A stretch of 64,000 nt of DNA from Selaginella moellendorffii (GCF_000143415.4 NW_003314301.1:282259-346258), one strand, 5' to 3'. Counted from the stretch's first letter, positions 45,217-47,531 are shown. Numbers and translations are program-made. The notes: a model not told the origin generated them from the letters alone.

Positions 45217-46302
45217 ATGGCAAATCGAGTGTTCTTCCTCGCATTCTTCCACTTCGCAATCATTGTGGGCTTCTCCTCGGGGCTCGACACCGCCATTCTA
45301 GCCGATCTTCCCACCAGCAATCTCGCCGGGGCGTGGGCGGATCTCCTCTCGCTCGTCGACGCACACAAGGGCGATTCCAAGCCCGCGATCCAGAAGCTCA
45401 AATCTTACTTCGTGGATTTCGGCTACCTCGGCAACTCCACTCTCACTGCCGATCTCTCCTTCGATGACGCGCTAGAGGCCGCCGTGAGGCTCTACCAGCA
45501 GAATTTCCACCTCCCGGTCACCGGGAACCTCGATTCCGCCACAATAGCCCAGCTCGTCACGCCCAGATGCGGTGGAATCGACGTGGATCCCAGCGGCGTC
45601 TCGCAAATGCTCCAGAATCTCACCCATCCCGGCACTTCCCATTTCGTCAAGCACTACTCCTTCTTCCCAGGAACGCCCAGATGGGTCTCCAAGCGATCGC
45701 TCACTTACGCATTCGATCAATCCACGACGTCGCTGGCCTCTGGAATCCCCCTGAATTCTCTCCGGACGGCCTTTAGCAGGGGATTCCAGCGCTGGGCGAA
45801 CATCGTCCCTCTCACATTCACAGAGACCTCGTCGATCTCCTCCGCGGACATCGTCATCGCGTTCGCGGGCTTCGATCACGGCGACCGGCATCCATTCGAT
45901 GGGCAAATGGGCGTTCTAGCTCACGCATTCGCTCCCGAGGATGGGCGATTCCACCTCGACTCCTCCGAGTCCTGGAGCGTCAATGTTCGATCCGCGACGT
46001 CGCTGGCCGCGATCGATCTGGAATCCGTGGTGACCCACGAGATTGGACACCTGATCGGGCTGGGCCACTCGGGCGATTCCGCGGCGATCATGTTTCCCAG
46101 CATCGCTCCTCGGCAGATCAAGACAGCGTTTGGACAGGACGATATCGACGGCGCACAGGCGCTGTACGGAGCCAATCCAAACTTCGTGCCGGGCTCGACC
46201 ACCGGTACGGACTCAAACGTCCAGAGTTCGAGCTCGTGGAAGGCCACGTTTTCTTGTTGGCATTTGCTTGTCCTCCTTGTCCTTGCCAAGATTCTTTTAT
46301 AG
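45217..46302 (+). CDS. Plant matrix metalloproteinase (M10A), intronless, probable GPI anchor
   Basis: Signal peptide, PGBD-like prodomain, cysteine switch PRCGGID, HEIGHLIGLGH zinc motif, Met-turn AIMFP, hydrophobic C-terminus. Confidence 0.95.
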   Translation: MANRVFFLAFFHFAIIVGFSSGLDTAILADLPTSNLAGAWADLLSLVDAHKGDSKPAIQKLKSYFVDFGYLGNSTLTADLSFDDALEAAVRLYQQNFHLPVTGNLDSATIAQLVTPRCGGIDVDPSGVSQMLQNLTHPGTSHFVKHYSFFPGTPRWVSKRSLTYAFDQSTTSLASGIPLNSLRTAFSRGFQRWANIVPLTFTETSSISSADIVIAFAGFDHGDRHPFDGQMGVLAHAFAPEDGRFHLDSSESWSVNVRSATSLAAIDLESVVTHEIGHLIGLGHSGDSAAIMFPSIAPRQIKTAFGQDDIDGAQALYGANPNFVPGSTTGTDSNVQSSSSWKATFSCWHLLVLLVLAKILL

Positions 46303-46328: not shown

Positions 46329-47531
46329 ATGATTCTAGGGCTCCTCCCACCGGTAGAGCGCCTTCTCGGGGTGGCGATTCCTTGCGCCGGCGCTGCCGCC
46401 GGATTCAATGCGGCATTGCTAGCATGGCAGGTGCGATCGCTGCTGCGAGCTGTGAATCGGGAAATTTATCGGGGATTTCTTGCGGATTTCTAGTGTGCAG
46501 GGAAGGCATTCCGGGTTTCTTGCGCTACCCCTGTTGCCGGATCGCTGCTGGGAGGCGTGGCGGTGGCATCGGCCTCGGTTCTCGCAGCTCAGGTTCTCGT
46601 TAATCAATTTCAGTCATAGATTTCTTTGATTCTTAGAGCTCTCTTTGCAACGCAGGTAGCGTTTGCGCTGGAATCTATTGTAGAAGAGGGCAATGGCAAG
46701 AGCCGGAAGAGGAAATTGCCGAGTGTTGGCGATCTAGTTCTTCATGCGGCAGTGGGCATGGTTTTGTTTAAGGTTTGCTTGGAAATTTTCATAGACTAGA
46801 CAATGTAGCCTACTGTTCATACAGATACTTGGCGGGCACTACAGGAATGTGATGCCAAGTAGCTTAAGCCATCCTGGAGCACTCTCACGATACTCAGTGC
46901 CTGGTCAGTTTGCCTCCTTTGATTTTTTCTCTCTGTCCCTCTCGTGCTGATTATTCTTTGGTCAGCTAGAGGATCAAGGTACGCAGGCGATGTAGAAGCA
47001 CAGCTCGTAAGAGACTTGTTTAGCAAGTATGGTTGTCATCACTGTGGAAGCTACAAAGGGACCAGGTACTCTCAATTTCCCTGGAGCTGACATTCACTCG
47101 TGAATTATTTTCTTAGCATAGCAGATCATATGCCACCCAACGTCGTGATGAAGAACAAGGTCGCCGAGAAACTGAGAATACTGAAAAAATTCAACTTTTC
47201 ACTTGCCAAGCATGTATTCAACATGGTCCATAAGCTCGAGTTGCAACGGTTCTACCCGCAGTGCGAAGCGTGTATGAGAAAGCAGGGTGGAGCTTTAAGG
47301 CAAGGCAAAAACGAGCTCGTCTACCATTTTAGAGTTGGCTTCCCAGAGGTAAATAAGTATTTCAACGCCACAAAGAATTATTTTTGTGTTTTTTGTTGCA
47401 GCCTCCATATCTCACAGGTTTTTTTCTCAGTGCTCTCAAGCTAGAGGACAATAACCAGGTAGAAACCTCACGAAAAATTGGCGACAGTTTACTCATCCAT
47501 GGTTTAAATACAGGGTACAGACAAAAAATGA
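46329..47531 (+). CDS. Spliced membrane protein with C-terminal HNH/His-Me-finger-like domain (not captured by the ORF track)
   Basis: GT-AG exons in phase: 46329-46430, 46494-46592, 46656-46772, 46825-46903, 46966-47065, 47117-47348, 47402-47458, then 47514-47531 (or read-through to 47566). Motifs GCHHCG, IADHMPP, QRFYPQCEACMRKQGG. Confidence 0.8.

Follow-up and report, generated by a model that had tools for sequence, protein, structure and literature searches.

The DNA analyzed here is a 64,000-nt stretch of the Selaginella moellendorffii genome (referred to below as the window). At positions 46329 to 47531 of the plus strand, the window contains a gene whose eight exons add up to 804 nt, i.e., 267 codons and a stop, with consistent phases throughout. 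All seven introns are of the GT-AG type, are 51 to 63 nt long each, and have a G+C content below that of the exons; two split codons give rise to Ala133 and Ser166. A full HMMER scan with the 77-aa exon 6 retrieved a 267-aa protein whose residues 167 to 243 are 100% identical to the query, and the translations of all eight exons are exact ordered substrings of XP_024540035.1 (P0068; 267 aa). An earlier note, made from the sequence alone, had described a hidden, intron-rich, phase-consistent gene at this location. The exon structure is fully borne out by the exact match. The gene is not hidden, however, since its exon translations equal a RefSeq protein: XP_024540035.1 is isoform X1 of LOC112349592, which is already annotated as “uncharacterized protein.” The motifs quoted in the earlier note (GCHHCG, DHMPPN, and QRFYPQCEACMRKQGG) are all present. 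The coordinates of the gene and its surroundings are collected in Table 1.

Table 1. Features of the LOC112349592 locus. Positions are counted from the first nucleotide of the window.
Feature	Position	Strand	Content
Matrixin ORF	45217..46302	+	single exon; Peptidase_M10 plus PG_binding_1
Exon 1	46329..46430	+	aa 1-34; start codon, most of hydrophobic helix 1; AF2 helix 9-39
Exon 2	46494..46592	+	aa 35-67; conserved RVSCATPV loop, initial part of hydrophobic helix 2
Exon 3	46656..46772	+	aa 68-106; last part of helix 2, basic linker (KSRKRK), hydrophobic helix 3
Exon 4	46825..46903	+	aa 107-132 plus 1 nt; LGG..R..MPS...PGA...S.PA segment leading into the toxin-type domain
Exon 5	46966..47065	+	aa 133-166; helix 141-154, first zinc knuckle
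GCHHCG	47031..47048	+	Cys156 and Cys159 (zinc ligands by analogy), invariant His157; compare Cys38/Cys41 of Gme HNH
Exon 6	47117..47348	+	aa 166-243; β1 with Asp-His, helical insert, β2, second zinc knuckle, α helix
DHMPPN	47124..47141	+	Asp169-His170 at the end of β1; predicted catalytic pair; compare Asp53-His54 of Gme HNH
QRFYPQCEACMRKQGG	47244..47291	+	invariant Gln209, Gln214, Cys215, Cys218, and Gln222; Arg210 nearly invariant
Intron 6 donor, read through in isoform X2	~47349..47357	+	
Exon 7	47402..47458	+	aa 244-262; short hydrophobic C-terminal helix (PPYLTGFFLSAL)
Exon 8	47514..47531	+	aa 263-267, TGA stop
Stop codon of the gene	47529..47531	+	TGA
Methyltransferase stop codon	47533..47535	−	convergent SAM-methyltransferase gene

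A protein that differs from XP_024540035.1 by one residue, XP_024518152.1 (P0001; LOC112341759), is encoded on a different scaffold and probably represents the second haplotype of LOC112349592; the Selaginella genome also carries a second paralogue, LOC9652271. RefSeq lists a 250-aa isoform X2 (XP_024540036.1, P0067), in which the donor of intron 6 is read through and the C-terminal hydrophobic helix is not present. On one side, the gene is flanked by a plant matrixin gene and on the other by one for a methyltransferase, with tight spacing at both ends. The matrixin ORF ends 26 nt before the ATG, and because of this short gap, either the promoter or 5′ untranslated region (UTR) overlaps the matrixin gene or the two genes are cotranscribed. 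On the other side, the TGA and the stop codon of the convergent methyltransferase gene are separated by one base; the 3′UTRs therefore overlap the opposite coding sequences, and natural antisense transcripts are possible at this pair.

A word search with XP_024518152.1 returned 45 relatives (best E value of 6e-70), all named hypothetical or uncharacterized, and a profile search returned 94. The support for the family is thus far above chance. In addition to the Selaginella paralogue, lycophytes are represented by Diphasiastrum, bryophytes by Sphagnum, Marchantia, and Calypogeia, ferns by Ceratopteris, Adiantum, and Pteridium, streptophyte algae by Closterium, and chlorophytes and prasinophytes by Coccomyxa, Chlorella, Enallax, Flechtneria, Chloropicon, and Ostreococcus. 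In Marchantia polymorpha, only one orthologue is annotated, Mp1g08910. A stramenopile relative, from Mallomonas annulata, falls within a large environmental clade with the motif FIADHMPPT. One metagenome contig that encodes a member of this clade (P0015 on L040) is 5.5 kb long and intron poor; the gene adjoins those of a GMA12/MNN10-type glycosyltransferase and a coiled-coil protein, and the contig most likely stems from a small eukaryote akin to the Mallomonas sequence. Seed plants and animals are absent among the named matches of the word and profile searches of annotated protein sets, in line with the remark in the earlier note that no such gene was recognized from flowering plants; neither search returned an apicomplexan member. 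Where relatives have N-terminal extensions, these are charged and unlike transit peptides.

A maximum likelihood tree of the domain unites 27 sequences of the green lineage in a single supported clade (96/86), within which embryophytes and chlorophytes separate (95/90). A single green clade with such a split is the topology predicted by vertical descent from one early acquisition.

To find bacterial relatives, one genome per species was scanned with QR[FL]YPQCxxC, the most conserved pattern of the family. The scan yielded 39 confirmed loci in Acidobacteriota, Cyanobacteriota, Pseudomonadota, Actinomycetota, Bacillota, and Bacteroidota. The match is always located at the extreme C terminus of the bacterial ORF, which ranges from about 90 to more than 2100 aa in length. 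Long ORFs carry RHS_repeat, RHS core, and DUF6531 domains; in Streptomyces, there is a WXG100-like N terminus (WXG100_2), and for the copies on plasmids, the annotation reads RHS core or polymorphic-toxin HINT protein. Plant and bacterial sequences align over the Cys/Asp-His/Cys core and over a lead-in, PG.fA.eSIPA, that precedes it; the LGG..R..MPS...PGA...S.PA segment encoded by exon 4 is common to the plant proteins and the bacterial toxins. A comparison of the plant profile with the bacterial profile by hhalign gave 99.8% (E value of 2.4e-29) over 90 columns. The ~130-aa domain of the plant protein shares ancestry with the domain found at the C-terminal end of RHS, HINT, and WXG-type toxins, and the link to RHS proteins proposed in the earlier note is thereby substantiated. 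A tblastn search of phage genomes gave no match. One of the bacterial domains, from a Hyphomicrobiales metagenome-assembled genome (L017:6001-6273), has an in-frame stop 38 codons into the match and is either a broken copy or an assembly error; it was excluded from alignments or included with X at the stop.

The surroundings of the bacterial genes were also considered. An Imm21 gene lies directly downstream of the toxin gene at three loci (L019, L002, and L023; E values down to 4.5e-29), and five further loci share the BLAST cluster of these Imm21 genes. At L020, the gene directly downstream is Imm33-like, and a neighbor at L033 belongs to the same BLAST cluster. Since small genes of immunity families directly follow the C-terminal toxin domains, the bacterial loci can be regarded as toxin-immunity pairs. 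Two additional types of neighbors were observed. The toxin gene is directly followed by a gene of the DUF7003 family (PF22535) at two loci that are unrelated to each other (L010:6331-6879 and L041:1497-1766), one from a Bacillus genome and the other from a metagenomic RHS fragment, which suggests that DUF7003 is an immunity protein. At 11 loci (L003:6294-6698, L015:6281-6646, L027:6279-6650, and 8 more), a family of 120- to 134-aa proteins with no Pfam match is encoded just downstream of the toxin gene or overlapping it; this is a candidate new immunity family for the toxin domain.

Homology between the plant protein and the toxins extends beyond the nuclease domain. The most informative sequence is a metagenomic RHS fragment (P0136), in which the end of the RHS core is followed by Gly/Ala-rich hydrophobic helices, a D-A-x-x-G-x-x-x-F-R-x-x-G-G stretch, CHHCG, DHIPPT, and QRLYPQCxxCM, and then by a DUF7003 gene. 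The alignment of this fragment with the plant profile extends over 186 columns, corresponding to Selaginella residues 11 to 227 (99.8%, E value of 3e-28). The score comes largely from the C-terminal domain; the region of helix 3 and the last part of helix 2, however, also contains a motif that is clearly common to the fragment and the plant proteins. Hydrophobic, Gly/Ala-rich stretches also separate the RHS core from the nuclease domain in two other RHS C termini (P0172 and P0183). When the plant N-terminal profile was compared to the 39 bacterial ORFs, only marginal matches were obtained (L006 and L039), so that homology of the N-terminal part rests on P0136. A quick tree contains a starred split (95) by which P0136 groups with the eukaryotic proteins and is separated from the GCHTCG/DHQPP-type toxins of bacteria (35 sequences). 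Its placement hints at the type of donor; with few columns and a short search, the tree is a hint rather than a proof.

The three N-terminal helices of the plant protein are hydrophobic and rich in Gly and Ala, as the earlier note had it, and their hydropathy is sufficient for a membrane anchor: In most family members, the 19-residue (KD19) maxima of helices 1 to 3 are 1.5 to 1.9. Two positions encoded by exon 2, Ser43 and Gly54, are almost invariant in the family. A profile search of the Protein Data Bank (PDB) with the full family produced only matches with E values of ~0.05, in which the helical hairpin at residues 18 to 95 of P0001 (exons 1 to 3) is paired with the hydrophobic head hairpins of MakA and Nhe L1. 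We treat this likeness of Ala/Gly-rich helices to pore-forming toxins as compositional, although it is in keeping with a membrane-inserting segment. Structural alignment of the full-length model described below returned only membrane helical hairpins (Z of 5 to 6), which is nondiagnostic. Judging from the sequence and the model, the plant protein is likely to be associated with a membrane.

An AlphaFold2 (AF2) model of the full-length protein was built from the 45-sequence alignment (pLDDT of 90.5, pTM of 0.86). It contains helices at residues 9 to 39, 49 to 79, and 91 to 107, strand bridges at ~118 to 119 and 131 to 132, and a helix at 141 to 154 that is followed by the GCHHCG loop. The predicted ββα unit consists of a strand at 166 to 171 with Asp169-His170 at its end, a strand at 210 to 215, and a helix at 216 to 227; between β1 and β2, there is a helical insert (174 to 203). 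Such inserts, 30 to 60 aa long, are found in the eukaryotic proteins only, while the bacterial toxins lack them. Because structure searches with the full model are dominated by the long helices, we also folded the domain alone, using a natural fragment of 127 aa (P0020; pLDDT of 85.5), in which the ββα unit is predicted as well. When this domain model was compared to 48,161 PDB chains, the top 22 matches were nearly all HNH/EndoVII nucleases, with low Z scores of 2.7 to 4.4. The list, which is coherent although these scores are low for a firm claim, is headed by 4h9d (4.4) and includes T4 endonuclease VII (1e7d, 3.9), McrA (6ghc, 3.8), several Cas9 HNH domains, ZRANB3, Cap5, IscB, and PtuB. 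Foldseek searches of the PDB with the full-length and domain models gave nothing significant. Of the structural checks that the earlier note had proposed, the AlphaFold prediction of a ββα unit thus came out as anticipated in both models, while the structure searches gave a mixed picture: structural alignment of the domain points to HNH/EndoVII nucleases at low Z, and Foldseek does not.

Comparison at the level of profiles leads to the same protein. In a search of PDB sequences with the bacterial profile, 4H9D (Gme HNH) was matched at an E value of 0.057 and was the only nuclease and the only match spanning the catalytic core. The alignment places the CxxC pairs on Cys38/41 and Cys73/76 and the Asp-His on Asp53-His54, positions that PMC3765158 identifies as the zinc ligands and the active site of Gme HNH. 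With these residues in register and the predicted ββα unit, the two Cys pairs flanking an Asp-His conform to the HNH treble-clef layout that the earlier note had read from the sequence. Among 54 sequences from plants and bacteria, eleven residues never vary (C156, H157, C159, G160, D169, H170, Q209, Q214, C215, C218, and Q222); since this set spans both groups, nothing that is invariant among the toxins has changed in the plant proteins. At two positions, the family departs from canonical HNH enzymes. The Asn between the strands is absent, the position of Asn68 of Gme HNH being occupied by Arg210, and the metal-ligand Asn/His after the second CxxC is likewise absent, the position of Asn77 being occupied by Ser in bacteria and by Ser/Met219 in plants. 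The invariant Gln222 is located one helical turn beyond the latter position. For this reason, the metal site can be assigned by inference only. No Pfam family was matched at threshold by single exons, 10 full-length relatives, the 45 family members, or 33 bacterial domains, and NCBIfam has no model for the domain. Subthreshold Pfam matches were seen for bacterial relatives only and were to HNH_5 in two members (E values of 0.003 and 0.066) and to NinG (E value of 0.1).

Overall, these results are best explained if the nuclear gene LOC112349592 is the descendant of a complete RHS C-terminal toxin module and encodes a membrane-tied HNH nuclease, a reading that we consider probable. Activity of the domain as a nuclease is likely on the basis of the sequence comparisons and structure models. 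In such an enzyme, Cys156, Cys159, Cys215, and Cys218 would coordinate a structural zinc ion. His170, positioned where β1 ends, would be the general base that activates water for phosphodiester cleavage; Asp169 together with Gln222, and possibly with Gln209 or Asn174, would hold the catalytic divalent metal, and Arg210 may contact the phosphate. With hydrophobic helices 1 to 3 as its membrane tether, the enzyme would cut nucleic acid at the membrane surface. An early ancestor of green plants most likely acquired the gene, which would then have passed vertically from prasinophytes to ferns; from annotated protein sets, it appears to have been lost in seed plants. Organelle DNA turnover, repair, and programmed cell death are possible roles; the probability of any particular one is well below those of nuclease activity and of membrane association.

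An alternative is that the fold and the zinc site were kept while nuclease activity was lost, which would leave a membrane-bound module that binds nucleic acid or protein or performs other chemistry. The replacement of the canonical Asn and Asn/His metal positions by Arg and Ser/Met, the helical insert of 30 to 60 aa between β1 and β2 that distinguishes the eukaryotic proteins from the bacterial toxins, and the lack of an HNH model at threshold can all be read in this way. However, the same two substitutions are found in the bacterial toxins, which are presumably active because they are paired with immunity genes, and every toxin-invariant residue, the Asp-His included, is invariant in the plants as well. 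We therefore regard loss of activity as unlikely.

The protein might also still be a toxin, i.e., a cell-killing effector that is held in check by membrane sequestration or by a partner. Programmed cell death, antimicrobial defense, or a genetic conflict in which, for example, the organelle DNA of one parent is eliminated could be its uses. Retention of the whole toxin module, hydrophobic helices included, and of all toxin-invariant residues speaks for such an effector, as does the distribution of the family, which spans algae to ferns with no seed-plant member found. The species-like tree, the low copy number, and the modest divergence are nevertheless a better fit to a housekeeping function than to an arms race. 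A surviving toxin is thus quite improbable. Lastly, although the closest non-eukaryotic relatives of the domain are bacterial toxins, a spurious gene model or bacterial contamination of the assembly has a negligible probability given seven canonical spliceosomal introns of typical Selaginella size, a position between plant matrixin and methyltransferase genes, two probable haplotype copies and a paralogue in the Selaginella genome, and orthologues that track plant phylogeny.

Returning to the descent of the plant gene from an RHS toxin module, a stronger version of this reading can be formulated. It holds that an RHS warhead, composed of membrane-entering helices and an NGO1392-type HNH domain, was captured by an early green ancestor, kept active and membrane-tethered for hundreds of millions of years, and discarded by seed plants; a related version of the toxin module is present in stramenopile algae. 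Taken in its entirety, this scenario is rather unlikely. If true, it would imply a role in a process that algae, bryophytes, and ferns share and that seed plants have changed; selective breakdown of organelle DNA would be an example.

The presence of the clade in green plants has already been published (PMC3113570 and PMC3482391), and genes of this kind are known from comparative genomics. New are the homology of nearly the whole protein to an RHS C terminus, the lack of a curated model, and a phyletic pattern without seed plants. The gene provides a clean case of a bacterial weapon domain that became a conserved eukaryotic gene, with homology that reaches beyond the catalytic core. Its distribution, from prasinophytes to ferns and in stramenopile algae with no seed-plant match, is a testable handle on the role, and Mp1g08910 of Marchantia polymorpha offers a single orthologue in a tractable model. 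For bacteriology, a toxin domain is defined along with three or four candidate immunity families.

Among known systems, the family is closest to the NGO1392-like (Tox-SuFu-Nuc) clade. As described by Zhang et al. in 2012 (PMC3482391), this clade has the HNH/EndoVII fold and the signature CxxC, DH, CXXC, Q, occurs in RHS and HINT contexts, and is partnered by Imm-SuFu, Imm13, Imm21, Imm33, and Imm38; the NGO1392-like HNH is listed as the sole toxin partner of Imm21, and the eukaryotic range includes Viridiplantae and stramenopiles. Zhang, Iyer, and Aravind (2011; PMC3113570) listed members in animals, plants, stramenopiles, and apicomplexans and proposed that the eukaryotic members may have become a DNA-repair enzyme. 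The plant and bacterial family shares the CxxC, DH, CxxC, Q signature with this clade; the bacterial relatives share its C-terminal location in RHS/HINT polymorphic toxins and its Imm21 and Imm33 neighbors; and the eukaryotic relatives fall in Viridiplantae and stramenopiles, both of which are listed for it. Because signature, context, immunity genes, and taxa all fit, we file the gene under the NGO1392-like clade, to which it very probably belongs, the placement being based on the published description. Each of the two papers gives the eukaryotic members one sentence, and neither describes the hydrophobic N-terminal module, the missing seed-plant matches, or the gap in Pfam models. The animal and apicomplexan members listed for the clade did not appear in our family searches.

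The best structural match, the HNH nicking endonuclease Gmet_0936 of Geobacter metallireducens (4H9D; PMC3765158), aligns with the domain model over 74 residues (Z of 4.4, rmsd of 3.7) and has a Cys4 zinc site and Asp53-His54 in register with those of the plant and bacterial family. It differs from the family in that Asn68 and Asn77 correspond to Arg and to Ser/Met, the family instead having an invariant Gln four residues past the last Cys. It is also without the PS..PGA..S.PA lead-in, the hydrophobic helices, and the toxin context. GH-E (PF14410) resembles the bacterial relatives in being a small HNH-fold toxin domain at the C terminus of polymorphic toxins, and a language-model search with exon 6 placed GH-E clusters nearest (score of 0.83), which we took as a lead only. 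This identity was rejected: there was no PF14410 match at E values up to 10 for exon pieces, 45 eukaryotic relatives, or 33 bacterial domains, and the motif is Asp-His, not Gly-His, with no conserved Glu. Unlike whole RHS toxins, the plant protein lacks RHS repeats and any domain for secretion or trafficking, and its gene has spliceosomal introns and is not adjoined by an immunity gene. What the plant protein matches is the part of these toxins that follows the RHS core, i.e., a Gly/Ala-rich hydrophobic stretch and a nuclease domain.
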